Shown here piece after piece: positions 6,978 through 30,022 of a stretch of 37,532 nucleotides of DNA; position 1 is the first letter of the stretch; every line of letters begins with the position of its first letter. The notes beneath the pieces are model-generated. The model was not told where the DNA came from. It made no database searches and saw only the letters and a list, made by a program, of their open reading frames with translations. Position numbers and translations under genes: made by a program. Origin of the DNA: Octopus sinensis (taxonomy: Eukaryota); NCBI RefSeq assembly GCF_006345805.1, contig NW_021835903.1, forward strand, positions 1 through 37,532. Reading direction: 5' to 3'.

Positions 6978-7180
6978 TGTGCATCTGTGACTGTCGACCC
7001 CCACCATCGTTTGAGAACCAGTGTTGTGTGTTTACACCCCTATAACTTAGTAGTACAGCAAAAAAGACCAATAGAAAAACTACTAAGCTTACAAAGAGTA
7101 AGTCCTCGGATCGATTTCTTCTACTAAAGGTGGTGCTCCAGCATGACCACATTCAAATTACTGAAACAAGTAAAGGAATA
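6975..7180 (+). mobile_element. 3' half of tRNA-derived SINE family A
   Basis: cccctataacttagtag..caaaaaagaccaatagaa...aaggtggtgctccagcatgaccac...actgaaacaagtaaaggaataa, shared with 14375-14720. Confidence 0.7.
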
Positions 7181-7549
7181 AGAGAATACATATACATATG
7201 TGCACACATACATATAAGTTAGTTCCTGGGAGATTATTTGCAGAGAAACCCAACCTGAGCTCTGGGCTGTTGGATTCCAGACCAATACCAAAATTCTTCA
7301 AGCATAAGAAATGCCGGTTTCCCAACAGTAACACCATAGTTGTGTTACACAGACATATACACAGATATATATATATATACATACATGTGTATATATAAAC
7401 ATGTGAGTGTGTATGTGTATATATATACACACATATATATATATATATACATACGTATATAAAAATAAGCATATCTATATATATATGTGTGTATTTATGA
7501 GAAGGTTGTATGTTATTTCAGGAAAATTTCTTTATTATTTCTAACAAGA

Positions 7550-10369: not shown

Positions 10370-10575
10370 TATGTTTGTGCTTATGTTTGTCCCCCAGCTT
10401 CGCTTGACAACCGATTTTGATGTTTGCGTCCCTGTATCTTAGCGATTTGGCAAAAGAGACTGATAGAATAAGTATTGGGCAAAACAAAGAATAAGAACTG
10501 GGGTCCATTTATATTTGACTACAGGTGGTGCTCCAGCATGGCTGCAGTCAATTGACTGAAACAAATAAAGGAATA
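10370..10575 (+). mobile_element. 3' half of SINE family A
   Basis: cttgacaaccgattttgatgtttgcgtccctgtatcttagcgatttggcaaaagagactgatagaataag...ggtggtgctccagcatggctgcagtc. Confidence 0.75.
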
Positions 10576-10591
10576 CAATATATACATATAT

Positions 10592-13450
10592 AAAGTCTTC
10601 TGGCAGGGTAACATGGATGGGGTAGGGGGTGTAGGCATTCTCCTTGCGGAGAAATGGGTGGATAAGGTCATAGAGGTTGTCAGGGTTTGGGACAGAGTGC
10701 TTAAGCTCAGGTTAGTCCTACAGAGTGGCACAGCTACGATTATCTCCGCCTATGCCCCACAAGCGGGCCTACCAAATGATCAGAAGGACCACTTTTATGA
10801 TACCCTTCTACAGGCTACCTCAAAAACTAGTGGCAAGGACCTCATCTTTGTGGGTGGAGACTTTAATGGGCATGTTGGGCGGGAATCGGGTATCTTCACT
10901 GGGGTTCACGGTGGCCATGGTATTGGCTCCAGAAATGAGGAGGGAACTAGACTACTGGAATTCTGTGATGCATGTAACCTTTTAATCTGCAACACTAACT
11001 TCAGGAAGCCTGACTGCCACCTTATAACCTATCAGTCAGGGGACTCCGCTAGCCAAATAGACTTCATCCTCACCAGACAGCGGGATGCAGGGTCGCTCTT
11101 AAATACAAAGACCCTCCCGGGTGAAGAGTGTATCCCTCAGCATAGGCTAATAATTAGTGACTTTAGGCTTGAGGCCAGAAGGACTCCAAGAAACAGACCA
11201 ATCCAGAAAAGAAGGATTTGGAAGCTAAAGAACCCTTCACATGGTCAGAGATTTAGGGACATCCTCATCAAGAAATTTGATGAGAGGGAGGAGGAGCTAC
11301 AGACGTCGGACATAGAAGGTAGCTGGAAATTCCTACGGGACAGCTTGCTGAGTGCCACAGACCAAGTCTGTGGATGGTGCAAAGTTCCTTCCAGACCTAG
11401 AGTTACGTGGTGGTGGAATAGTGCAGTAGACAAAGCCATTAGTTCTAAGAAACAGGCCTGGAGAGCCTGGAGGGATGGGGGTAGCAGGGAACCGTACCAA
11501 GTAGCCAAAAGGGAGGCCGGGCGGCAGGTATACATAGCCAAAGATATAGCAGAAAAGAAGAAGTTTGCCAATGTCCAGCGACGTGAGGACCAAAGAACTG
11601 AGGTATTTCGTATTGCTAGACAGTGTGTGAGAGAAAATAGTGATGTTACAGGAGAGAAATGTGTCCGCATGGATGATGGGGCACTTGCCTTTAATGTTGG
11701 TGAAAAGAAAGAGGCTTGGAGAAGCCATTATGAAAGACTGTTGAATGTGGAGAATGAATGAGAGGAGGAGAGCCTGCCAAATGTTGACCCAGTAGAGGGA
11801 CCAGCTATCCGAATAGACGGCTCCCTAGTAGATAAAGCAATTAAGGATATGAAACTGGGTAAAGCCCCCGGCCCATCATGAATCACTGCTGAGATGCTTA
11901 AAACAGCTGGTTATGTGGGCTATGGCCTAGTCACCCGCATTGTTAACCAGGTAGTTCACAATGGAGTCATACCCAATGACTGGCGTAGCAGCACCATAGT
12001 CAACTGCTACAAGGGTAAGGGTGATGCTCTAGATAGAAATAACTACAGGGGTATTAAACTGTTGGATCAGGTGATGAAGACCACAGAGAGGGTCATAACC
12101 CATCTCATTAGGGAGAGAATTTGCTTAGATGAGATGCAGTTCGGTTTTGTGCCAGGTAGAAGCACCACTGATGCTATATTCCTGGTCTGACAACTGCAGG
12201 AGAAGTACCTAGCTAAAGATAAACCCCTCTACATAGCTTTTGTGGACTTGGAGAAAGCCTTTGACAGGGTTCCCCGATCCCTTATCTGGTGGTCGATGCG
12301 GAAACTGTTGATTGACGAATGGCTAATAAGGGCTGTACAGGCTATATACAGAGAGGCTGTCAGCAAGGTTAGGATTGGCAACGAATATAGTGAAGAATTC
12401 CGGGTAGAAGTAGGTGTACATCAGGGCTCAGCCCTCAGTCCCCTTTTATTCATCATAGTCCTCCAGGCAATAACAAAGGAATTCAAAACAGGTTGCCCCT
12501 GGGAGCTCCCCTATGCTGATGACCTGGCCCTCATAGCAGAATCACTACCGGAACTAAAAAAGACATTTCGGATGTGGAAACAAGGGTTAGAATCTAAGGG
12601 CCTTAGAGTAAATGTAGCGAAGACCAAAGTTATAGTATGCAGAAAGGCGAACTCAGCACACCCCCCATCGGGCAGGTGGCCCTGCTCGAGCTGTAGGAAA
12701 GGTGTAGGTAGAAACTCCATAAGATGCACCCAGTGTAAGCTATGGACGCATAAGAGGTGCAGCAACATCAAAGGGAAATTAACTGATAAGATAGCTTTCA
12801 TGTGCGGCAGATGCACAGGGACAATAGACACCACAGACACTCAAAAAACAGATTCCATCACACTCCAGGGGGATAAACTAGAAGTAGTTGATAGTTTCCG
12901 CTACCTGGGTGACCAAGTTAGTAGTGGGGGTGGATGCTCAGAGAGTGTCACCACTAGAATACGAATAGCCTGGGCAAAGTTTAGAAAGCTCCTACCCCTA
13001 CTGGCGACAAAGGGTCTCCTACTCAGAGTGAAAGGTAGATTGTATGATGCATGTGTGCGAACTGCCATGCTTCACGGCAGTGAAACATGGGCCGTGACTG
13101 CAGAGGACATGCGTAGACTTGAAAGAAATGAAGCTAGCATGATCCGCTGGATGTGTAATGTCAGTGTGAATGCACGACAGAGTGTAAGCACCCTGAGAGA
13201 AATGCTAGGCATAAGAAGCATCAGATGCGGTGTGCAAGAGCGACGCTTGCGATGGTATGGTCATGTACTGCGGATGGATGAGGAGAGATGTGTGAAGAAG
13301 TGCCACTCCCGAACAGTTGAAGGAATCAGGGGGAGAGGTAGACCCAGGAAGACATGGGATAGTCAAGCATGACCTCAGAGCGTTGGGCCTCACTGAGGCA
13401 ATGGCCAAGGACCGAGACCTCTGGAGATGTGCTGTGACTACTAAGACCCG
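10592..13450 (+). pseudogene. Disabled RTE endonuclease/reverse transcriptase ORF (joins track ORFs 10613, 11894, 12242 and 13317)
   Basis: The three ORFs share one frame and are split by in-frame TGA at 11759, 11879 and 12188 (expected W, G, R by family context). One frameshift near 13358 (KTWD / IVKHDLRALGLTEAMAKDRDLWR). Confidence 0.9.
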
Positions 13451-14374: not shown

Positions 14375-14720
14375 GTGGCTGTGTGGTAAGAAGCATGCTT
14401 GCTAACCACATGGCTCTGGGTTCAGTCCCATTGCATGGCACATTGGTCAAATCAAAACCTTGTGAGTGGATCTGTTAGACGGAAACTGAAAGAAGCCCAT
14501 CAGATATATTTATGTGTCTCTGCTTCTCCCACCAACAGAGCTTGGCAACCAATATTGGTATGTTTACATCCCTGTAACTTAGCAATTTGGCTAAAGAGAC
14601 CAATAGAATAAGTATTGGTCTTAGAAAGAATAAGTCCTGAGGTTGATTTGTTTGACTAAAGGCAGTGCTCCAGCATGGCCACACTCAAATAACTGAAGCA
14701 GGTACAAGAATAAAAGAATA
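14375..14720 (+). mobile_element. tRNA-derived SINE family A, near full length
   Basis: tggctgtgtggtaagaag (A box), ggttcagtccca (B box), body and gtgctccagcatggccac...aataaaagaata tail. Confidence 0.8.
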
Positions 14721-14749
14721 TATATATATACACATGGCCTTACTTGTGC

Positions 14750-17029: not shown

Positions 17030-17390
17030 CTAACGGGGTGCAAAGATCACCATACGAGTGGTCGCTGACAGAGCGGCCAACCGGCTTCTTTGCCAGTGGC
17101 ACATAAAAGGCACCATTCAAGTGTGATCGTTACCAGCGTCGGCTTACTGGCACTCAAGCCCTGTGCTAGTAGGGTGTTAAGGGCACCATCCGAGCATGAT
17201 CGTTGCCAGAGCGGCTATCTGGCCTCCATGCCAATGGCATGTAAAACACACCATTCGAGTGTGATCGTTACAGCATTGCCTTACTGGCACCTATACCGTG
17301 GCATGTGTAAAAGATTCGAGCGAGGTCATTGCCAGTACTGCCCTGACTGTCCCGTGCCAGTGGCATGTAAAAGCACCCACTACAGTTGGT
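17030..17390 (+). mobile_element. RTE-UTR-like module array (gtggcacataaaaggcaccattcaagtgtgatcgtt), joined to a SINE C tail
   Basis: 4-5 diverged ~60-70 bp modules similar to 13600-14110 and 14770-14900. Confidence 0.7.
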
Positions 17391-17504
17391 GCTGGGGTTG
17401 ATGTAATCGACTAGACCCCACACCCAAAATTTCAGGCCTTGTGCCTATAGTAGAAAGGATTATTATTATTATTACTATCTTCAAAATATCACCAAAAAAA
17501 GATG

Positions 17505-17740
17505 GGGGCATGGCTGTATGGTTAAGAAATTCACTTCACAACCTTGTGGTCTCAGGTTCAGTCCCACTTTGCAGCACCTTAAAGAATTAACTTCTTCTAA
17601 TGTTCCAGGTTGACTCAAGCCTTGTGAGTGGGTTTCGTACATGGAACTGATAAATCCTATGGTATATATATGTGGGTGTGTATATTCATGTGTGCGTATC
17701 TACATTTGTACTTGTATGTGTGTGTGCGTGTGTGCATGTG

Positions 17741-17771
<31 letters not shown>

Positions 17772-17990
17772 TTGTGTGTGTGCGTATGTCTGCTCATGTC
17801 TCCTTGTCTTGACATCTGCTGCAAATTATAAACAAATGTCACGTCACACAAACAGAGTCGTTTGTTTGCAGTGTTCCACCAGAAAACATATCCAACCATT
17901 GTGCTGTTCATGTTGGAAGAACTTGGGAAAATATTCTCTTGCTTGAAGCCAGGTGAGGATTGGTGACCCTCATCGAGTGTAGTCATAGAC
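17505..17990 (+). mobile_element. SINE family A variant with (GT)n insert
   Basis: ggctgtatggttaagaa, ggttcagtccca, gcaccttaaag, aagccttgtgagtgg. Confidence 0.65.
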
Positions 17991-18721
17991 TTGACTGAGT
18001 GGGACTCACAAGAACCTGGCAAGAAACAAAACAAAATTATGAGAAAGAAAATACAGAAAAGAAAATACATCATCTGATGCATTATAAAGGTTTTGACATC
18101 CATTTTCCCTAACTGGCATGGGGAGGACAGTTGACGAGGAAGCAGTGAACCAGAGGACATTGCTGAGCTGCAATGAAAGATTTGGCAAGATTTCTACAGC
18201 TGGATGATCTTCTTAACACCAGATGCACACATACACGTGTGTGTGTGTGTGTTTATGCATGCATAAGAGTATATGAATGAATAAACATGGGTTTACTTAT
18301 GTTTGATTGCACATCTGACTTTGTATGCTAGCATGGGTTAGGTGAATATATTATTGTAGCCTTGTTTTACAGACAGACAGCCTTTCTATTGCTCACCCAA
18401 AACCATTTTGCAAGAACAAAAGTTCTTATTTCCCATGTCTTCCAAGGTGGGGGTGATTGGTTGACAGATGTTTCTGCCTGGAGCAATTTAAAAGAGATTG
18501 CAAACATAAACAAATGCACAGACACCTACGCGCACACACACTCAGCTCGAGTTCACTGCTTCCTGTAGCAGAAACAGCTGGAAGCTAATGAAGGTGTCTA
18601 CGTAACTCTTGTTCTTTTGTCGTTCATTGATTCATAGCTATAAACATACATAGACACAGATATTTGTACATGAGTGTGTGAAGGTATATATATGTATATA
18701 TATACATATATATATATATAT

Positions 18722-19060
18722 ATCATCATCATCATTTACCATCCGCTTTCCACGCTAGCATGGGTTGGACGGTTCAAATGGGGTGTGGGAGGCCTGAAGG
18801 CTGCACCAGGCCCAGTCTGATCTGGCAAAGTTTCTACAGCTGGATGTCCTTCGTAACACCAACCACTCCGTGAGTGTAGTGGGTGCTTTTTATGTGCCAC
18901 CGGCACGGGGGCCAGGCGATGCTGGCAATGGCCATGATCGGATGGTGCTTTTTATGTGCTACCAGCACGAAGGCCAGTCGGGCGGCGCTGGCAACGGTCA
19001 CGTTCAGATGGTTCTTTTACATACCACCGGCACTGGTATCACAACTACAATTCCATTGAT
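18722..19060 (-). mobile_element. RTE 3'-tail derived element
   Basis: Begins (TCA)n on the + strand (the minus-strand (GAT)n tail), and is the reverse complement of the RTE 3' UTR, including gtatcacaactac. Confidence 0.85.
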
Positions 19061-19549
19061 GTTGATCGACTTGGATTTTGATTTTGATATATATTATAAA
19101 TATTTAGCAGAAGTAACAAAGTGACCCAAGATCCAAAAGTTTCGTTTAATAGCATTTATCAAACTGGTTCTTTGGAGGTATATTCCCAGACCTCCAAAAT
19201 CCAGTTTGATGAATGTCAACTCTCGGACCTTGAGTCCCTACTGTCACGCCCTATCACCCCTACCTCTATCTTTCATCTCTCAATCACTCTCTCTTCTTCT
19301 TTTACTCTATCTACTATCTTACTGCTGTGACAAAGATTGGCAGTAATCTCTTCTCTCACCATTCTTCCAATGAACTAGGGATGTTACTGCCTACCTGAGT
19401 CTCTCCCCAACACTCAGCCACTCTTTTTCAATATTTATTACCCTAGATCTCTCACACATCCCAAGGTATATGCAACCCAGAGATTGAGGGGAACCTTTAG
19501 TTTTGTCAAGGACATGGCGATCGCCTCTAGTGATGGTGCCATAAGATGC

Positions 19550-19690
19550 ACCCAGTGCACATTGGCAGTGGTTGGTGTCAGGAAGAGCATCCAGCTGTGA
19601 AAGATAACCAGAAAATGTAACTTCAGGCAAGATATTCTTTGAACATCCAACCCATTCCAGCATGAAAATGGGGGTAAAATGATGATCATC
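19550..19690 (+). mobile_element. Short diverged LINE/SINE tail
   Basis: gtggttggtgtcaggaagagcatccagctgtgaaa...ccattccagcatgaaaatgggggtaaaatgatgatc. Confidence 0.55.
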
Positions 19691-20608
19691 ATACATACAT
19701 ACAGACATATGGATGTATAATATAATCATATGTGCATCCTTGTGTATATATTATACACATTCATTCTATCATATATACATTATATGTATGTGTATCCTGA
19801 AGAAGGTCTCTTTTATTTTTCATTCCTCCTGGGGTCAATAGAGTAACAGTCATTATTTCATAGACCAAGGAGGCGGTGGAGGATCATTCTGATGAGGATG
19901 GGTCACCAGAATGTCATTAAACACCCCACCAATATTTCCTAATCCACCTCATTAAACCCCCAATACTTCATAATAAACTACACCAAGTTATAACTCCTCA
20001 CCTAACACAAACAAAACACACTTCACCTGCCAAACCCCTTTTTCATACAAACACATCTTTCTCATTGCTACCCAAAACATTGTCCCTTATATTAAAGATA
20101 ATTAAGTGACCTACTTTCATTAATTGGGCTTATTCATTAACCAATCTTTATATCTCAATCAGCAAATATAACGATCCTCTCAATATGCTGTCTATCAGTG
20201 TGATTATATGAAAGCCCATCTTTGGATAAGCTTTCCGAGTTAATCAATGTTGTGTATGATAATTGTGTGGATTATATTGAAATGTCGAGAGATTTACAGC
20301 ATTTGTCAGGTTAAGAACAGTTTCATCTCCAGCTTTATTGGTATCTGTGAATCCAGGTAAATATGATGGAAACCAAGCCAACCATGACTGTCACATCATT
20401 TCCAGTGCATATAATTATTAATAATACTTATATTCCTGATTTGTAGGGACGTGGTATTTCATTATGCAACCATAAATTCCTGTAAAATATATTAAATCGT
20501 TTTAGAAGTCAACACCACATTCTACTTTGTTAGCAGTGTTTTTCACATTATTCTATTGATATTCCATAGAAATTATAGTTGGCTCTGATTTTTTGCTAAA
20601 GCCTTTCC

Positions 20609-20713
20609 TATCGAGATGTCAGATGTAAACAAACAATGAGATACACAATGAGAACTAAAAACAGATGTTTTTCTCTTTGATCTCATTGTTTGTTTCCGTC
20701 TGACATTTCGATA
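20609..20713. repeat. 105-bp hairpin / MITE-like inverted repeat flanked by TA
   Basis: Arms tatcgagatgtcagatgtaaacaaacaatgagat (20609-20642) and atctcattgtttgtttccgtctgacatttcgata (20680-20713): 31/34 Watson-Crick pairs, 2 G.U pairs and 1 mismatch. Confidence 0.85.
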
Positions 20714-21173
20714 TGAAATGTTGTAGCAGGAAATCAGTCCTGGCTATAATTTCTACCGATAATATCTGTAGAAATAACCTCAACAAAATATTTATATTCC
20801 TTCTTACTACAAAACTTTTCACCATCACTTATATTCAGTCAATAAAGATAATGGTGTATTTATATCTTCAAGTTTTATTTCTAATGATTATTCCATTGGA
20901 AACAGTTTAAATGTTTAACTTCACTGTCAAATAAACAATTTGTTTAATATATTTAATGAAATGTGTGTTTTCCTTGAAATTCTTTGAATGAATCAAGTAA
21001 ATATTATTTTATCAAAAGCTTTTCACAAAACTAATAAAGCTTTCATTTTATTTCAGCTTTCACGTAAAAATTAGTGAATTTTGAAGAGATAAATTGTATT
21101 CGAAAGGAAGAAAACAAAATCCACAGAAAAGAATATATTTAACAGAAAAAGATAATAATTCTATATTCATAAA

Positions 21174-21683
21174 ATGGAGAAGATTAATGAAGAAAACAAA
21201 ATGTTGGCTCTCATTCCTGCCACAGTCTGTGATACAACAGCAATTTATAAGGAAACTACACCAATTCTTACCCAAATATTACACACACAAAACACAAAGA
21301 AAACAGAAGAACAGGAAAGAAAAGACACAAAGAAATCTAAAGAACAGGAAAAGTCCATGTTACCAAGTTTTCTTCATATTGTGACATGTTACCGAACACT
21401 AATCAAAACAGACCACATCAATACGTTTATAGATTATGTAAAGGATAAATGTAATCACATGGACTCTCTGGGTTTAAATGGATCTCGAATTTTACGTAAT
21501 ATCAAACGTAAAATGCCAAGATTTCTGGAATTTGCAAAACAAAATAATGATTTTGTTCACCTAAACCTTGATTGGTTTCAACAAAGACTCTTTGACATTT
21601 ATGTCACCTGTAACCCATACAACCACAAGACCATTGAACCACCAAAAGTAACCACAAATTTCGTCCTCTTCGGCCAGTTGTGA
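21174..21683 (+). CDS. Helical / coiled-coil-like N-terminal segment of the propeller locus (169 aa)
   Basis: K/E-rich helical sequence. Adding one A at 21644-21647 continues into the next ORF (PK-SNHKFRPLRPVVTREVEI). Confidence 0.6.
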   Translation: MEKINEENKMLALIPATVCDTTAIYKETTPILTQILHTQNTKKTEEQERKDTKKSKEQEKSMLPSFLHIVTCYRTLIKTDHINTFIDYVKDKCNHMDSLGLNGSRILRNIKRKMPRFLEFAKQNNDFVHLNLDWFQQRLFDIYVTCNPYNHKTIEPPKVTTNFVLFGQL

Positions 21684-22519
21684 CCAGAGAAGTAGAGATT
21701 GAGGAATCTGGTGAAGACTTAAGCAACCCAATATCCAATATTGTTGTCATACAAGGGGGTATTGTAACATATTCCCGCCACTTTATGACAATATGTTGTA
21801 TAACAAGAGACGGCAACAGAAACGATGTTCGTTGCTCATCTTCTGTCACTGATTTTACCAGAATCAGTGAAGACACAGTCCTCGCCACCCTGCCCTTCCG
21901 AAAAATGATTCTTATTATCAACCCTTTAAGTTTGAGAATCAAAAGAATTCAGCTAGGATTAATCTTGGTTTCTTATTTGGAACATTCTACGCTTATAGGT
22001 GTAGAAATGTTTGGTCGGACCATATACGTCATTGACTGGGAAGAGAATAGAATAAAATACGAATTCATAACGAAAGAAACCCCTTCAGATATTGCTGTAG
22101 GAGCACAAAATAAACTCTTAGTATCCTTTTCCAATATTAACAGGGTTACCTGTTACAATGTGGATGGTCAGCAGTTATTTGAGGTGGATACAAATTCCCT
22201 GGACATTCCAAGCCACATCTCTGTGTACCAAAACCATTTTTATGTCCTTCAGGGACATATTATTTATCGGATATCAGGTACAGGTGCTGTGACAACAAGA
22301 GAAATTGGCATGAAATGCCGCCATATTTCTGTTGGCAAAGAAAACATTTTTGTAACCGATTATTTTGATGTCCTTCATATCATTGGAACAAATGAAGACT
22401 TTTGGCCCAGGCAGTCACATAACCCCCAGCTATGGACCCCAACATTGAACAACTATATTTATATTGAGGATTGCAACAACATTACAATATTCTACCTATG
22501 TCTACATCTTCTATATTAA
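21680..22519 (+). CDS. NHL-like beta-propeller module 1 (279 aa)
   Basis: NHL-like blade PSDIAVGAQNKLLVSFSNINRVTCYNVDGQQLF, plus VTDFTRISEDTVLATLPFRKMILII. Confidence 0.75.
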   Translation: MTREVEIEESGEDLSNPISNIVVIQGGIVTYSRHFMTICCITRDGNRNDVRCSSSVTDFTRISEDTVLATLPFRKMILIINPLSLRIKRIQLGLILVSYLEHSTLIGVEMFGRTIYVIDWEENRIKYEFITKETPSDIAVGAQNKLLVSFSNINRVTCYNVDGQQLFEVDTNSLDIPSHISVYQNHFYVLQGHIIYRISGTGAVTTREIGMKCRHISVGKENIFVTDYFDVLHIIGTNEDFWPRQSHNPQLWTPTLNNYIYIEDCNNITIFYLCLHLLY

Positions 22520-23891
22520 TAATTTACAAAAACAAGAAGCTAAATTATTCACTGATAACGGGGAAATAATTAACCAAAATAATTCAGTTTTCCTTGAGCT
22601 TCCTTCTTTCTGTTGTAGAATAAACGCAAACAGATTCCTGGTATTTTATTGTGAAATGAAAGGATTTCAGGATATCACCTGTCCTGAACTAAGAAAAGGC
22701 CCTTTAATAAAGGTGCAAACTGGTTACATGAAAATATGTCATATTGTATCAAATAAGTATGTAGCTGTGACCACCAATGAAAACAAAAGCGAGGTCCATA
22801 TCCTCTTGATCAACGAAGATAAAGTTGACATTGCAGAAAGAATTTCTCTGGGACATCATAATGTCAGCATTGCTGCAACTCCAATTAATTTTGTAGTCGT
22901 AGATGGAAACGAAAATAAAATGGTATTTTATTCCACATGTGGTGAAGAACTTTTTCAAAAATACCTTCCATTCTATGGCCACCCTCATCACATCTACTCT
23001 GATAATGTTTATTTCTATGTCCTCTTCAGGAGAAACTCTATTCTCAGATGTTACGATCTATATGGACAAATGAAATGGCAGTGGGAACTGCCTTTCCCTG
23101 TTCACCCTCACATTGCTGTTTTCCAAGGAACTCTTTATGTCCCGGACACTCAACTCAACAGGGTTCTTCTTTACAAGTATCAAGACCGGTCGTCTGGCTG
23201 TCTTTTACCCATTAAAAATCCTTATATCAGAAATCTAAATCTACGACTCAAAGAAAAGGAGAATGACCAAAAACTTGTCATTGGCGAAATATGTAATCTG
23301 TCCAATGGACAGTTGGTGGTGTCTGACATCAAGCATGATTGCTTGTTGTACATTTCTGAGGAAGGAGACATTGTGTCCAGATTATCTCTGCCGTCTACAG
23401 CCACAGATATATGTCGATGGGATTCTAATCATATAGGGGTCACATTACCCCTACAGAAACAATTAAGGGTCATCGGAAACCTATCAAAGAGAGTGAGAAG
23501 TGTATCATTAAGGCAGCCTTATGTACGGGTGTGTAAGATGGGTGAATGTGAAATTGTTTGTTATTGTGATAAACCATCACATTTAGACATTTTAGCCATC
23601 AATTATTATAATCAAGTTGAAGAAGTAATTAAGACAATTAATATCCCTGTGTTTGTGAAATCATTATCAGTAGACAAGGAAACAGAAAAGCTATTAATTG
23701 TTACTAGGGGAAAAGCTTTTCAGTACAACACTAGAATAGGTGGTGGTGGTCATGGCAGTGCACGTCGTCAGAGTGGTGGAAGTGATGGTAGTATTAGTAG
23801 TGGTGATGGTAGTATAGTAGTAGAGATGGTAGTATTAGTAGTAATGATGGTAGTATTAGTAGTAGAGATGGTAGTATTAAGTCTAAAATAA
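22464..23891 (+). CDS. NHL-like beta-propeller modules 2-3 (475 aa)
   Basis: PHIAVFQGTLYVPDTQLNRVLLY, ICNLSNGQLVVSDIKHDCLLYISEEG, ATDICRWDSNHIGVTLPLQKQLRVI. Confidence 0.8.
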   Translation: MRIATTLQYSTYVYIFYINNLQKQEAKLFTDNGEIINQNNSVFLELPSFCCRINANRFLVFYCEMKGFQDITCPELRKGPLIKVQTGYMKICHIVSNKYVAVTTNENKSEVHILLINEDKVDIAERISLGHHNVSIAATPINFVVVDGNENKMVFYSTCGEELFQKYLPFYGHPHHIYSDNVYFYVLFRRNSILRCYDLYGQMKWQWELPFPVHPHIAVFQGTLYVPDTQLNRVLLYKYQDRSSGCLLPIKNPYIRNLNLRLKEKENDQKLVIGEICNLSNGQLVVSDIKHDCLLYISEEGDIVSRLSLPSTATDICRWDSNHIGVTLPLQKQLRVIGNLSKRVRSVSLRQPYVRVCKMGECEIVCYCDKPSHLDILAINYYNQVEEVIKTINIPVFVKSLSVDKETEKLLIVTRGKAFQYNTRIGGGGHGSARRQSGGSDGSISSGDGSIVVEMVVLVVMMVVLVVEMVVLSLK

Positions 23892-24005
23892 AGCTTTCTT
23901 CACGCTCTTTCGTTGTGGTGGTCATCGTCGTCCTCTCCTGGTGATGGTCATCATCGTCCGCTTCGTGGTGGTGGTCATCATCGTCGTCGTCTTCATGGTG
24001 GTAAA
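23745..24005 (+). repeat. Coding-like low-complexity repeats (gatggtagtattagtagt = DGSISS; ggtggtcatcatcgt = GGHHR)
   Basis: Four copies of an 18-21 bp unit, then three His/Arg/Gly units. Confidence 0.7.
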
Positions 24006-24130
24006 ACTAGATATCGTTATGTTAGTAAAACAGATGGTCCCCAGTGTTTTAATGTCCCAAGTGAAACATCCTCAGTCTCCAAGGTGGATCTATTGACCAA
24101 ACGTCTGTTTATCTGATAGACAGAAGCCGT

Positions 24131-25714
24131 ATGTTTGCCATAAACGATCAGAATTTGTTGGTTAATGATCTCGTTACTAATAATCAACTTAATTATTATA
24201 TCGACCTGGTGGATGTATTTTCCAGACACATTTCTCTCAGTGAAATGTTGTCTTCCACTTTATATCTACAGGACCTCACAGTTTCTGATAAAGCCAGACA
24301 TATTCCTCTCCCTAAACATTTGGGAGACAAAGAACCAGCGTGGATTAAAAGTTTGGTTCTTACTGAAAATAATCTGATTGCAGGATTTGACAGGAATAAT
24401 GGAAACATTAAGATATTCACATTGGATGGTCACCTTTTGGATTCAATCAAAGTGAATTTTTATCATAGTATTAAAATGTGTCGATGGCAGTCAAACACAC
24501 TGGTCATTACGAGTTGGGATCTTTCTAATAATAAATACCCACTGTTGACATTAAAAGTGGAATTTCCATTGTCGTTGGTAAATTACAAAACGAGAAATAA
24601 TTATGAATGTGTGGCTTCTTTATCAAACAATCAACTGGTTTTGAGTGAAGTGAGAGATGGAAGACATTTGCATTTTGTTGATATTGATGAAATACATTCG
24701 AGTGTGAAGGAAATAAAAAAAATAGACATACCTGAACCATTAATAAGGAGAAGAGAAGATGGAGATTATTCTGATATAATCCAGGATATTAAAGTTACTG
24801 ATGAAGATGTCATCATTGTCTTAAACTTCAGATTCATCATTTTCTTCAACAGTGGTGGTCAATATTTACATTCAGTCAGACACTACATGGAGTATTCTAA
24901 TTATGGCAGGATGACAATTGATGACAGTTTTTTGTACATTTATGGTGAGTGGGAGAAATGTTTTAGTTCATCTGGATATCGAAACATTTTGTGTTTGACC
25001 CAGAATGGGGAATACGAGAGAATATTTTTAAATAAAAGGATTTATAAAGATGAAGTAGAATTCTCCAGTATGGACTGTAAAGGACCAAGGTTTGTTGGAA
25101 GCCGCATGAGGGGAACGAATGAATTGTATGTTGAAGGGTTGTTTATGGTGAATCGAGACAGCTTCCCGGTTGCTCGTTTACAAACAGACGAATGTCCTGT
25201 TCAAGTAAAAGATTTTGATGTCTCTGAGGAAGGAAAGACAGTTGTGTGTGAAAAAGCCAATAATGGAAATGTTAAAATATTCGATGAAGACGGCCAGTTG
25301 CTACGTCACAGAAATGTTGCAAGTTTAGTTGGTGGTGTGTGTTTTACACAAGAATCACACATAATGGCCACGGTTCCTAAAAGGAAAGAAATATTTCAAC
25401 TGAATGGAGAAGATTTGCAGACATCTCAAGTTTGCTCGAGTCTCATCCCTTATGGTGTTATATGGAGAAAAGTGGCGGGTATTTACTGGTGTGTACATAA
25501 TGAATTGATTGAATGTCATTGCATAAAGATTGATGGGGACCAAGTGAACATTCTGGAATCTGTGTCGTTATTGAATCTTGATTCTGGTCTTCGTTTCCCT
25601 TCCATTACATCTGAAACGAACAAGGAAATATTCAGTAATGAATTAATTAATAAATTGGAATACAGAGGAGGAGATGGAGGAGAAGAAGAAGAAGAGGTAA
25701 ATCAGGTGAAATAA
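24131..25714 (+). CDS. NHL-like beta-propeller modules 4-5 (527 aa)
   Basis: IAGFDRNNGNIKIFTLDGHLL, KMCRWQSNTLVIT, KDFDVSEEGKTVVCEKANNGNVKIFDEDGQLL, VGGVCFTQESHIMATVPKRKEIFQL. Confidence 0.8.
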   Translation: MFAINDQNLLVNDLVTNNQLNYYIDLVDVFSRHISLSEMLSSTLYLQDLTVSDKARHIPLPKHLGDKEPAWIKSLVLTENNLIAGFDRNNGNIKIFTLDGHLLDSIKVNFYHSIKMCRWQSNTLVITSWDLSNNKYPLLTLKVEFPLSLVNYKTRNNYECVASLSNNQLVLSEVRDGRHLHFVDIDEIHSSVKEIKKIDIPEPLIRRREDGDYSDIIQDIKVTDEDVIIVLNFRFIIFFNSGGQYLHSVRHYMEYSNYGRMTIDDSFLYIYGEWEKCFSSSGYRNILCLTQNGEYERIFLNKRIYKDEVEFSSMDCKGPRFVGSRMRGTNELYVEGLFMVNRDSFPVARLQTDECPVQVKDFDVSEEGKTVVCEKANNGNVKIFDEDGQLLRHRNVASLVGGVCFTQESHIMATVPKRKEIFQLNGEDLQTSQVCSSLIPYGVIWRKVAGIYWCVHNELIECHCIKIDGDQVNILESVSLLNLDSGLRFPSITSETNKEIFSNELINKLEYRGGDGGEEEEEVNQVK

Positions 25715-25788
25715 TGGTAAAGGTAGATTAAGGTGAGATGTGGTAATTACATAGCGGAGATTAATAATTAGGAATTGATGAAATATCA

Positions 25789-26823
25789 GTGAGGAGACTT
25801 CCATATAGGACAGCAATGGTCCCTTTTTCCATTCCTGCATTCGAGGAACCTGTTGATTATGATTTCAGGGACATTAGGGACCGGAACAGTAAACTAATTA
25901 AGTTAGATGAGAATGTGAGTGTGTTGATGTTTCGAGAAAGTGTCACATTAATCAGAACAACAACAACAACAACAGTGGACATACTTCAACATGAACAACA
26001 ACAACGAACACCACTGGACATATGTCGGTGGACAGAGGAATGTTTCATTGTCGCCTTTGGGAGAGAAATGAGGGTCTTCAACAGGGATCTCCGTCGTTTA
26101 AAAACCATCAGAACTGAGAAATACTACAACAGGATTTATAAATACAACGACAATCAACTCGTGTGTGGTGGTCACGATATTAGAGACATAACTCAAGAAG
26201 AGAGACACAAGAAATACCAAAGAATATGGAGAAACAACAAGGATTACTATTATTGCAAAGACCCCTACATCTTTGACCGTTATTATGTGGATGTGGTTGA
26301 TATCAAAGATGGGAAATGTAAAGATGAAGTGTGTCATGGGGAGATGAGGAGATGGGGAATGTTTGAGGGAGATGAAGGGGTGTTGGATGGTGTGGGAGTC
26401 ACATCTTTTGGTGATGTTGTTGTTGTGAGGAGGGAGATGAAGGAGAAGTTTGGAGATTGGGAAGTTTTTTGTTTTGTGGAATGGTTCAGGGAAAAGTCTT
26501 TGGTGAGGAGGATAAGAATAGAAGGAATATTTATTGATCCGGAATATTATAATCCAAGACCTCGTCTGACCATAATTGGTGAATGTGTTTATATAACAGA
26601 TACAATAAACAATATTTACGAAATACCTGGACATATTGAAGAGGAAACATCTGAAGATGATGAAATCCGGGGATTAAAAGATAATCCAAAATATTTACTC
26701 CTCAGAGGGGATGATAATGAAGTCTTTGAAGTTCTTGGTTTGGATGTTTCAGACAATTCTTTGATGGTTTTTGGAATTATTCCTGGACCTCAATCTTTTG
26801 CTTTCTTTTATTTTGACAAATAA
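25789..26823 (+). CDS. Beta-propeller module 6 / C-terminal segment (344 aa)
   Basis: PLDICRWTEECFIVAFGREMRVFN, GVGVTSFGDVVVVR, LTIIGECVYITDTINNIYEI. The frame is open upstream to 25768. Confidence 0.75.
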   Translation: MRRLPYRTAMVPFSIPAFEEPVDYDFRDIRDRNSKLIKLDENVSVLMFRESVTLIRTTTTTTVDILQHEQQQRTPLDICRWTEECFIVAFGREMRVFNRDLRRLKTIRTEKYYNRIYKYNDNQLVCGGHDIRDITQEERHKKYQRIWRNNKDYYYCKDPYIFDRYYVDVVDIKDGKCKDEVCHGEMRRWGMFEGDEGVLDGVGVTSFGDVVVVRREMKEKFGDWEVFCFVEWFREKSLVRRIRIEGIFIDPEYYNPRPRLTIIGECVYITDTINNIYEIPGHIEEETSEDDEIRGLKDNPKYLLLRGDDNEVFEVLGLDVSDNSLMVFGIIPGPQSFAFFYFDK

Positions 26824-26881: not shown

Positions 26882-27204
26882 TAAATGGCTTCGCCCGGGA
26901 ATCGAACCTGCATCGCATACATTGCATTCTACACACTTATTGTTGTAACATTCCTCAACACTCTCTCTTTGTGTGTGTGTGTGTATATTTATATACAGTA
27001 TATATACATGTGTTTATATATATACACACATATTTAGGCATGTATGTATAGAAAAAAGGCTATAGATATGTATGTTTGTGTGTGTGTATATACGCATGTA
27101 TATATATGTATATATATATATATATACGCATGCATCTATGTATAGGAATGTCTGGTCCGAAAGCAGAGACTTTCATAATCATTGATTCTCTATTAAAAGG
27201 CAGA

Positions 27205-27454
27205 CGACCACCGCCGCCATCTCCGCCGTCGTCGTCGTGGCCGTCTCCGCCATCGTGGTCGTGGTGGTCGTCGTCGTCTCCGCCGTTGTGGTCGTCGTCG
27301 TCATCATCATCATCATCACCATCACCATCACCATCATCGTCGTCGTCATCATCATCGTCATCATCGTCATCATCATCAGCATCGTCGTCGTCATCATCAT
27401 CATCATCATCATATCGTCGTCATCATCACCATCATCATCAGCATCGTCGTCGTC

Positions 27455-27504
<50 letters not shown>

Positions 27505-27592
27505 CGTCGTCGTCATCATCATCATCACCATCATCATCACCATCACCATCATCATCATCATCGTCGTCGTCATCATCATCATCGTCGTCATC
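27205..27592. repeat. Compound trinucleotide tract (CAT/CAC/CGT)n
   Basis: Seen directly; source of the poly-S/H/M/I ORFs. Confidence 0.95.
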
Positions 27593-28415
27593 AGTGTCGT
27601 GTGTGCGTGTGTGCAGTCTGCATCTGACAGTTTTTAACGTTTAAAAAGAATAGATTGTTGTTGTTGTTGCAGTGACATTCCAACTGCACACACGCACAAA
27701 CATTGCCTTTCGTCCTCGTAGGGTTGTTGTTGTTGTTGTGGGTTCATAAAAAAAGTGAAGGACACTTTAAGAAGCAACTCTAAAAATATTGTCCTGCGGC
27801 GGTTTAAGTGTAAAATATTATAAAAGTACGCATCTATGAGTTTTATGTGTTTAAAAAACATAGCAAAGACATGTGTGTATATGTAGGTATATACATGTGT
27901 ATAAAGGTATTTTTGTATAAAAATGGGTATTTTTGAATGAAATTTGGTAGAAATAACTTTCAAACGATGCAGATTACGATTACAAAGAAATTTGTTGGCA
28001 AAATGTTTTGTAAGGGTTCGAGGGAAAAAATGTGTGATTTAAGGGAGATTTGGCTGTTGTTTCTAACACACCACCCTCCTTGTCTTCTTTTTTTTATCAT
28101 TTTTTCCCTCAGAAACACATTTATGTTATAAAAAAATAAAAAGAATATTTAAAAAATCTCTGATTATTTTTAGCCCCACTTCCTGGCCCCCGATTCTTTC
28201 TCTTTATATAATTGTAAAATATTGGAGAGCCTGAGAGATTCTTGCTGGGATATATCCACAGGGATTTAAATAAGAGCTTTGTAAAAGAGGATTTCTTTTG
28301 AGAGCATCCTTTTCTGTTAGGAAATGAAAGTGGAAGTTCCATTAAAAATATCCATTTTCCTGGAAGTTATGAGGAAACAAAGTCGATGGGGTGTTCATCT
28401 GTAGTTATGCCACAG

Positions 28416-29809: not shown

Positions 29810-30022
29810 ATTTTAAAGTCTCCTATGTATTGTATGGATATTCTTTATTTTTGTACTTAAGTCATTTTGACTGAGGCCACGCTGGAGCACCGCCTTGAAG
29901 GGTTCATTTAATCAAAAACATCGACACCAGGACTTATTAAGCCTTGTACTTAACCTATCGGTCGTCTTTGCCGAACTACTAAGTGACATAGACGTAAACA
30001 TAGAGACATCGGTTGTCAAGCG
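29810..30022 (-). mobile_element. 3' half of SINE family A
   Basis: gctggagcaccgccttgaag...atcgacaccaggacttatt...gtcgtctttgccgaactactaagtgacatagacgtaaaca...ggttgtcaagc. Confidence 0.75.

Follow-up and report, generated by a model that had tools for sequence, protein, structure and literature searches.

Positions 1 to 37,532 of contig NW_021835903.1 from the Octopus sinensis assembly GCF_006345805.1 (this whole stretch of 37,532 nucleotides, read on its forward strand, is called the window hereafter) contain five back-to-back open reading frames (ORFs) between 21 and 27 kb, and the question raised by this locus is whether these are genes, parts of one gene, or the remains of one, and what kind of protein they specify. 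Our answer, to which we give a probability of roughly 75%, is that positions 21174-26823 hold one decayed copy of an octopod-specific family of six-propeller genes with a single coding exon. Intact members of this family would consist of a helical N-terminus of ∼160-185 amino acids (aa) followed by six tandem units of 240-300 aa, each related to the NHL-type propeller.

One coding block in five pieces

The five ORFs, whose lengths had been given in a preliminary description of the window and were reproduced exactly, are as follows:

21174-21683, + strand, frame 0, ORF1, 169 aa
21680-22519, + strand, frame 2, ORF2, 279 aa
22464-23891, + strand, frame 0, ORF3, 475 aa
24131-25714, + strand, frame 2, ORF4, 527 aa
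25789-26823, + strand, frame 1, ORF5, 344 aa

Since the stop-to-stop extensions of neighboring ORFs overlap or nearly abut, the arrangement was read as one long reading frame broken by insertions and deletions (indels). The five stop-to-stop segments were joined by XX into a query of 1,855 aa and searched against a collection of 5.8 billion proteins. The 36 clusters that matched come without exception from Octopus vulgaris, O. sinensis or O. bimaculoides; all are labelled "uncharacterized" or "hypothetical", most are 1,600-1,900 aa long and almost none has a Pfam domain. Three of the proteins (P0001, P0002 and P0003) each cover 100% of the joined query. One unbroken ORF of 5,397 bp on O. vulgaris chromosome OX597841.1 encodes P0001 (1,798 aa), the best match; P0002 and P0003 also have one ORF each, of 5,613 bp and 5,406 bp. 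In the models of P0011, P0014, P0015 and P0006, which span 11-23 kb, one ORF accounts for 1,776-1,870 residues and is accompanied by a very short 5′ exon. The coding sequence (CDS) of P0001 aligns to the window with 97.3% nucleotide identity over 5,370 aligned bases. The five ORFs are collinear pieces of one ∼5.65-kb coding block, and no family fragments were found in the window outside 21-27 kb.

The preliminary description had proposed a single large intronless block, and paralogues that are intact as single ORFs of 5,397-5,613 bp bear this out. Its product of ∼1,900 aa with a helical N-terminus compares with ∼1,800-1,870 aa and helices that are predicted at low confidence. It had also called the gene unrecognised and without a nameable orthologue, a statement overtaken by dozens of models annotated as "uncharacterized protein" in Argonauta and three Octopus genomes.

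A profile of aa 420-1400 was further searched against 1.84 billion representative sequences at an expectation value (E) of at most 0.001. Among the 43 proteins retrieved, which included many Octopus fragments, full-length relatives came only from Octopus species and Argonauta hians (P0039, E 8.5e-290). The suggestion that the gene is lineage-specific is upheld to that extent, the lineage being Octopoda. No Pfam family covers these proteins, and no publication on the family was found in the library searched, either by topic or by LOC identifiers.

Six related units and their predicted fold

BLASTP of the five ORFs against one another, a database of five sequences, showed the repeats only faintly, with a best E of ∼1e-4. 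The family alignment was then treated as six sub-alignments in P0001 numbering, with boundaries set by the NHL-like blade and the "ICRW" blade register. Profile-profile comparison (hhalign) resolved six homologous units (U1 to U6) of 240-300 residues that align over nearly their full length, with probabilities of 50-92% and E from 1e-4 to 5e-7: U3 (697-952) against U4 (962-1243) scored 84.5%, U3-U6 and U4-U5 92% each, U2-U3 77%, U2-U4 69% and U1-U2 50%. Because the units align profile to profile over almost their whole length, the internal repetition is more than chance. The expected internal duplication of about six modules of ∼250-300 aa was thus recovered, and all six copies of the recurring blade motif quoted beforehand are present in the ORF translations. 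The parts of the block in the window are as follows, with the predictions of AlphaFold2 (AF2) and their predicted local distance difference test scores (pLDDT):

21174-26823, + strand, whole coding block, a frame-broken family copy running from the ATG to the TAA stop that are common to intact paralogues
21174-21730, + strand, N-terminal region (P0001 aa 1-185), predicted helical, with a Lys/Glu-rich stretch
21731-22450, + strand, propeller unit 1 (aa 186-425), 23 strands in AF2, pLDDT ∼80-89
22451-23258, + strand, propeller unit 2 (aa 426-695), all-beta in AF2 with 23-24 strands, pLDDT ∼70-80
23259-24307, + strand, propeller unit 3 (aa 696-955), strands in AF2 at aa 703-851, interrupted by a low-complexity linker
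23733-24082, + strand, the variable Gly/Ser/His/Arg linker within unit 3, with several frameshifts
23781-23879 and 23909-24002, + strand, linker minisatellites of 21 bp and 26 bp, respectively (Tandem Repeats Finder)
24308-25168, + strand, propeller unit 4 (aa 956-1245), predicted six-bladed with a hypervariable face, 23-24 strands in AF2, pLDDT 78-92
25169-25896, + strand, propeller unit 5 (aa 1246-1490), the most conserved, low confidence in AF2
25897-26820, + strand, propeller unit 6 (aa 1491-1798), beta in AF2, pLDDT 66-92, with a hypervariable segment at 26167-26601

The 21-bp minisatellite (4.8 copies) encodes SDGSISS repeats and the 26-bp repeat is present in 3.4 copies; the length of the linker differs by 268 bp from that in P0001, P0003 and P0011, and P0002 has the long form. 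Unit 5 contains a helix and a Gly/Arg-rich insert (25646-25732) at which four frameshifts cluster.

AF2 was run with family alignments on two halves of P0001, split at aa 862 in the unit 3 linker. The models show helices at aa 63-144 (low pLDDT) and all-beta modules elsewhere; residues 863-950 are disordered, and the split at aa 862 probably cut unit 3. The top Foldseek matches in the PDB were multi-propeller proteins only, including IFT-A, UTP/WDR, DDB1 and LRP4/LRP2 (E 1e-20 to 1e-12), with TM-scores of ∼0.2, a low value that multi-domain queries lead one to expect; on such models Foldseek cannot tell NHL from WD40 or YWTD propellers. From the earlier proposal of about six tandem propellers, the six homologous units stand, and the propeller fold is supported for some of them. 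Closed six-bladed rings would accordingly be well supported by the models for some units, and we infer them for the others.

Neither a signal peptide nor a convincing transmembrane segment was found in any member, and the proteins are probably soluble and intracellular. Two very divergent types of N-terminus (P0001 aa 1-160), beginning "MEKINEENK..." and "MEDQTENT...", occur on near-identical propeller regions and are homologous to each other (hhalign 95%).

Relation to NHL and TRIM-NHL proteins

Searches of the five window ORFs against Pfam gave nothing significant, with NHL appearing only at E 0.28 (11.7 bits) on ORF2. The family profile, when compared with the sequences in the PDB, matched NHL domains only (TRIM71 at E 0.0024, then Brat, TRIM3 and TRIM2). 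Outside the family, the closest profile matches were the metagenomic DUF5122/"delta-60" proteins P0055 (E 5.7e-27, 12 stretches) and P0059 (E 5.7e-9, 11 stretches), followed by a RING, B-box and NHL protein from the cuttlefish Acanthosepion pharaonis (P0058, E 2.2e-9) and an unnamed B-box and NHL protein (P0062, E 1.8e-7) for which sequencing-run assemblies are the only source. The P0058 and P0062 clusters, i.e. the cuttlefish TRIM-NHL protein and its relatives, were aligned, and this alignment served as target for hhalign. U4 matched it with a probability of 97.7% (E 1.5e-12 over 221 columns), U3 with 96%, U6 with 95% and U5 with 64%; U1 and U2 were not significant against this alignment. The P0058 group itself scores 29.1 bits on Pfam NHL, and P0058 carries "GICLW...VVVTLPENKQI", the same as the blade motif of the preliminary description. 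A homologue search seeded with P0058 retrieved only three TRIM-NHL-filamin proteins, a number limited by the word prefilter.

The view that the modules are NHL-like is favored by the match of U4 to the cuttlefish protein and by PDB sequence matches confined to NHL, and the units appear on this evidence to be propellers of the NHL type, with relatives among the cephalopod TRIM-NHL proteins. They may have arisen by internal duplication of one such propeller, in a protein from which RING and B-box are absent. Neither domain was matched in the window ORFs or the intact paralogues, and the N-terminal profile showed no similarity to the RING, B-box or coiled coil of TRIM proteins. An upstream exon carrying RING and B-box had been suggested; we rejected such a hidden exon, as the intact models share the same ATG and carry no such domain. 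Because it lacks the defining TRIM features, the family is not TRIM-NHL.

Hypervariable loops and mosaic paralogues

Column entropy across the family identified two hypervariable regions, aa ∼956-1240 (unit 4) and aa ∼1581-1725 (unit 6); the N-terminus is also variable, and units 2, 3 and 5 are conserved. Ratios of nonsynonymous to synonymous divergence (dN/dS) were estimated pairwise by the Nei-Gojobori method, from four intact CDS only and within a recombining family. The pairs below are given with dN/dS in the hypervariable regions, dN/dS in the rest of aa 161-1798, and the binomial P for the synonymous deficit in the hypervariable regions:

P0001-P0002: hypervariable 2.04; rest 0.40; P 0.010
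P0001-P0003: hypervariable 2.73; rest 0.42; P 0.0016
P0002-P0003: hypervariable 1.83; rest 0.40; P 0.018

Between the window and P0001, differences in the hypervariable regions amounted to 79.5 nonsynonymous vs 4.5 synonymous, and to 30.5 vs 0.5 within aa 1581-1725. These estimates suggest that diversifying selection acts on the hypervariable regions of units 4 and 6.

Within unit 4, entropy was 0.81 in loops and 0.39 in strands. Loop entropy alternates along the blade (A-B 0.13, B-C 1.37, C-D 0.25, D-A 1.03; Mann-Whitney P = 1.3e-9), and Arg and Lys are abundant in the hypervariable loops. Consecutive loops in a blade emerge on opposite sides of the propeller, and the ligand-binding face of NHL, WD40 and kelch propellers is canonically one of the two. 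Because it is alternate loops that vary, the hypervariable residues of unit 4 lie on one propeller face, and in the model they are predicted to decorate the canonical ligand-binding face.

The paralogues are mosaics. P0011 is 92-100% identical to the window in units 1-3 and 98-99% in unit 5, against 68-86% in unit 4, 56-83% over most of unit 6 and 38-54% in the N-terminus; over the final ∼50 codons identity reaches 97%. In P0003, unit 1 is the only divergent part. From segment to segment, synonymous divergence varies 4-6-fold, and this unevenness, together with the mosaic identity, points to exchange among the copies by gene conversion or recombination.

State of the window copy

Frame breaks were called against four intact references (P0001, P0002, P0003 and P0011), relative to which the window carries ∼12 specific frame-breaking indels:

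21656, + strand, 1-bp deletion at the ORF1/ORF2 join (frameshift 1)
22486 and 22537, + strand, two 1-bp deletions, from ORF2 to ORF3 (frameshifts 2 and 3)
23815 (-1), 23890 (-1), 23908 (+53) and 24032 (-2), + strand, breaks in the linker relative to P0002
24070, + strand, 2-bp deletion at the linker end, into the frame of ORF4
25679 (-4), 25715, 25730 and 25770 (-1 each), + strand, breaks from ORF4 to ORF5

With these indels a full-length protein is impossible from the window copy, and the working gene implied by the preliminary description gives way to what is, judged from the sequence, most likely a pseudogene. Indels are as dense in the coding block (19 per 5.4 kb) as in the non-coding flank upstream of it (6 per 1.38 kb), and dN/dS between window and P0001 outside the hypervariable regions is 0.91 vs 0.40-0.42 in the intact pairs. 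No protein model for this locus is present in the 5.8-billion-protein collection, and a search for the exact product of ORF4 likewise gave no record. Many further family models are fragments, which suggests that decay is common in the family. Most plausibly the window copy would have no role at all, or would serve as a donor when copies undergo gene conversion.

An unlikely alternative is that the frameshifts arose as consensus errors in the assembly, in which case the animal would have an intact gene at this locus, an ordinary functional member of the family. Six breaks are 1-bp deletions, several of them in short runs of A, T or C, and the 1-bp events in the flanks are deletion-biased too. 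Among 1,778 comparable codons none has acquired a stop by substitution, and in the hypervariable regions the ratio of nonsynonymous to synonymous changes (N:S) follows the same pattern in the window lineage (31:2) as in the lineage of intact P0001 (28:2). Errors of this kind sit less well with events of -4, -2, -2 and +53 bp or with 1-bp losses outside homopolymers (e.g. 22486 and 25770). The flank-like indel density, the elevated dN/dS, the lack of a protein model for the locus and the frequency of fragmentary family models also argue for decay.

Several observations count against the interpretation as a decayed six-propeller gene. The 1-bp events are deletion-biased (∼11 deletions vs 2 insertions, flanks included) and none of the ∼62 window-derived substitutions creates a stop; deletion bias and the lack of nonsense substitutions would also be compatible with an intact gene and errors in its assembly. 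Polarised N:S for the P0001 branch is near-neutral in the conserved regions (19:6 vs 23:6), which leaves the argument from relaxed constraint weak. Estimates of dN/dS from only four intact CDS are open to distortion by gene conversion. Pfam NHL (PF01436) stays below its gathering score in every member, including P0036 (18.5 vs 20 bits), and gives no match to members other than ORF2 and P0036. Lastly, the AF2 alignments were shallow (19-20 sequences; mean pLDDT 63-65), and units 3 and 5 were short or poorly modelled.

Possible function of intact members

Intact members may act as intracellular recognition receptors or scaffolds. The variable faces may bind ligands that change quickly, for instance viral, transposon or other non-self proteins or RNAs, or polymorphic ones of self, and the conserved propellers (2, 3 and 5) and the N-terminal helices could provide a scaffold, oligomerisation or effector contacts. 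Gene conversion would trade segments between paralogues, and a decayed copy such as that in the window could still donate sequence. An immune or RNA-binding role had been raised in the preliminary description, and the diversifying selection on one propeller face lends this inference indirect support; some recognition or immune-type role is a fair possibility that falls somewhat short of an even chance. The fuller proposal is more speculative and, taken as a whole, improbable. It would make these proteins a germline-encoded hypervariable receptor family of octopods, built in a new way from a helical N-terminal domain and six NHL propellers, that diversifies the faces of propellers 4 and 6 by duplication, gene conversion and positive selection, keeps decayed copies as donor cassettes, and serves antiviral, anti-transposon or self/non-self recognition.

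A different reading, to which we give a still smaller chance, is that intact members are RNA-binding post-transcriptional regulators like Brat and LIN-41 rather than variable receptors. The units are homologous to the TRIM-NHL propeller, the NHL domains of TRIM71, Brat and TRIM2/3 are their sole sequence matches in the PDB, the NHL domains of Brat and LIN-41 bind RNA via the top face, and the hypervariable loops are Arg/Lys-rich. Developmental RNA regulators, however, are conserved and single-copy, whereas this family comprises dozens of mosaic, fast-diverging paralogues with dN/dS above 1 on one face. Variable RNA targets (viral or transposable-element transcripts) would fit both receptors and RNA regulators.

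Genomic setting of the family

The copies examined on the 29-Mb chromosome OX597841.1 lie at 9.57, 9.80, 10.30, 21.88, 21.90, 22.03 and 22.66 Mb. They are grouped at 9.57-10.33 Mb and 21.88-22.68 Mb, some of them adjacent, with partial copies and C2H2 zinc-finger genes interspersed. Homology of the window locus to other family loci reaches ∼3.8 kb upstream and ∼2.1 kb downstream of the ORF:

17383-21173, + strand, upstream flank co-duplicated with the gene, 93.8-98.4% identical to locus L001 and also present in L002 and L003
26824-28952, + strand, downstream flank co-duplicated with the gene, holding (CGT)n and (TCA)n microsatellites

Because homology extends into both flanks, the duplicated unit is put at ∼11 kb; the extent of shared flank varies among loci, with no fixed termini. 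Segmental duplication of this unit into clusters on one small chromosome may account for the expansion of the family.

Partial family copies also lie beside the intact P0002 gene (L002 1-308 and 20137-22589), and the downstream fragment sits within a gene model that has C2H2 zinc-finger matches. P0009 (zinc fingers and family sequence) and P0012 (DUF4371 and family sequence) look like chimeric annotation models. Two members on other chromosomes, the P0038 cluster and P0036, are conserved and not fast-evolving. Identity within the P0038 cluster is at least 90% between O. vulgaris, O. sinensis and O. bimaculoides, and P0036 shares only ∼30% identity with the array copies. The P0038 cluster and P0036 may be the ancestral, constrained genes from which the array expanded.

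Alternatively, a transposable or virus-like element could have the block as its cargo or as its coding region, and the multicopy state would follow from that. Its intronless structure, the repeats around it, flanks co-duplicated over ∼11 kb and some gene models in which a DUF4371 transposase-like domain or zinc fingers are joined to family sequence would agree with such an origin. We nevertheless consider it very improbable and rejected a transposable-element cargo protein: no member has a reverse transcriptase, integrase, transposase or capsid domain, the product consists of propellers only, and the copies are regionally clustered and not dispersed. The P0038 cluster is conserved at its high identity on other chromosomes in three Octopus species, and flank homology ends differently between loci (terminal repeats were not searched exhaustively). 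That the five ORFs are separate small genes or chance ORFs can be dismissed, for although every one has a start and a stop codon of its own, they line up in order along single unbroken ORFs of 1,798-1,870 aa at paralogous loci, and their junctions fall on window-specific indels.

Other features of the window

The coding block had been described as the only long stretch of the window free of transposable elements. This statement was checked in part, and a LINE was located at 10.6-13.4 kb. Further features are listed here:

10613-13372, + strand, a long interspersed nuclear element (LINE, a non-LTR retrotransposon) with two ORFs
7005-7198, 10381-10592, 14524-14735 and 29824-30021 (and 4785-5002 in L001), copies of a dispersed repeat of ∼200 bp resembling a short interspersed nuclear element
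26098-26634, - strand, an antisense ORF of 178 aa inside propeller unit 6
27076-27644, (CGT)n and (TCA)98 microsatellites directly 3′ of the gene

Domains matched in the LINE ORFs were Exo_endo_phos_2 (associated with endonuclease and reverse transcriptase; E 6e-7) and RVT_1 (E 4.5e-18) with a PHD-like finger. The dispersed repeat occurs in at least 4 copies in the window, at 72-86% identity between copies. The antisense ORF, which has no independent support, is probably a chance ORF in AT-rich coding sequence, and the microsatellites give rise to spurious poly-Ser/His/Arg ORFs of 135-183 aa.

Significance and comparison with known systems

For annotation, the numerous fragmentary "hypothetical proteins" on OX597841.1 are pieces of one family, and the window locus is better labelled a (probable) pseudogene than five genes. 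The fold and the repeat type were already known; what is new is the six-propeller architecture without RING, the octopod-specific expansion and the face-specific hypervariability. In the searches made, an architecture of six NHL propellers with neither RING nor B-box was not found among described families. Cephalopod recognition receptors with high sequence diversity are poorly described, and this family bears four marks of receptor-type genes: it is lineage-specific, it is clustered and multicopy, its paralogues are mosaic, and its hypervariable loops lie on one face with dN/dS above 1. Its members are concrete candidates for tests of innate immunity, anti-transposon defence or allorecognition in octopus.

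Tandem beta-propellers in one chain are known from DDB1, IFT-A subunits, UTP/WDR proteins and the YWTD arrays of LRP4/LRP2. Such scaffolds share no sequence homology with the octopod family, are built of WD40 or YWTD blades, comprise two to four propellers (eight in LRP2) and are encoded by conserved single-copy genes; the low TM-scores (∼0.2) to them indicate that the relative arrangement of domains differs or is not reliably predicted. The DUF5122/"delta-60 repeat" proteins, presumably bacterial given their JGI/IMG and ENA metagenome sources and the family name, are matched by the profile at many blades (E 6e-27, 12 stretches) and differ in carrying other repeat families (Reg_prop, SBBP). 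This similarity appears to be at the level of the blade and additive over repeats, and is not evidence of orthology.

The closest relationship is to the TRIM-NHL proteins (TRIM71/LIN-41, Brat and TRIM2/TRIM3, with P0058 the nearest), to whose C-terminal six-bladed NHL propeller the units are homologous, the motif "..ICxW....VVTLP..KQ" being visible in P0058. As in those proteins, there is no signal peptide or transmembrane segment, so the octopod family is probably intracellular. It differs in the absence of RING, B-box and detectable coiled-coil homology, in having six propellers rather than one, in its single coding exon and restriction to Octopoda, and in forming dozens of mosaic paralogues with hypervariable loops whose NHL repeats score below the Pfam threshold.

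Fungal NLRs of the HET-E/HET-D/NWD type have hypervariable WD40 propellers (PMC4986451). Like the octopod proteins, they pair an intracellular beta-propeller, with hypervariable, positively selected positions on its ligand face, with sequence exchange between paralogues and repeats. Their blades, however, are WD40 and are joined to NACHT and effector domains that the octopod family lacks, and their diversity comes from shuffling near-identical repeats within one propeller (PMC4986451).

Teleost finTRIM and primate TRIM5alpha belong to multigene TRIM families under diversifying selection (PMC2657112). They resemble the octopod family in their large, clustered, lineage-specific expansions with frequent pseudogenised copies, and in positive selection concentrated in the loops of a C-terminal recognition domain. 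In their case the variable domain is B30.2/SPRY and not NHL, RING, B-box and coiled coil are kept, and an antiviral role is experimentally supported (PMC2657112), whereas the octopod family is known from sequence alone. If its intact members do prove to be receptors, they would be a cephalopod counterpart of the TRIM5/finTRIM or fungal NLR-WD40 systems.

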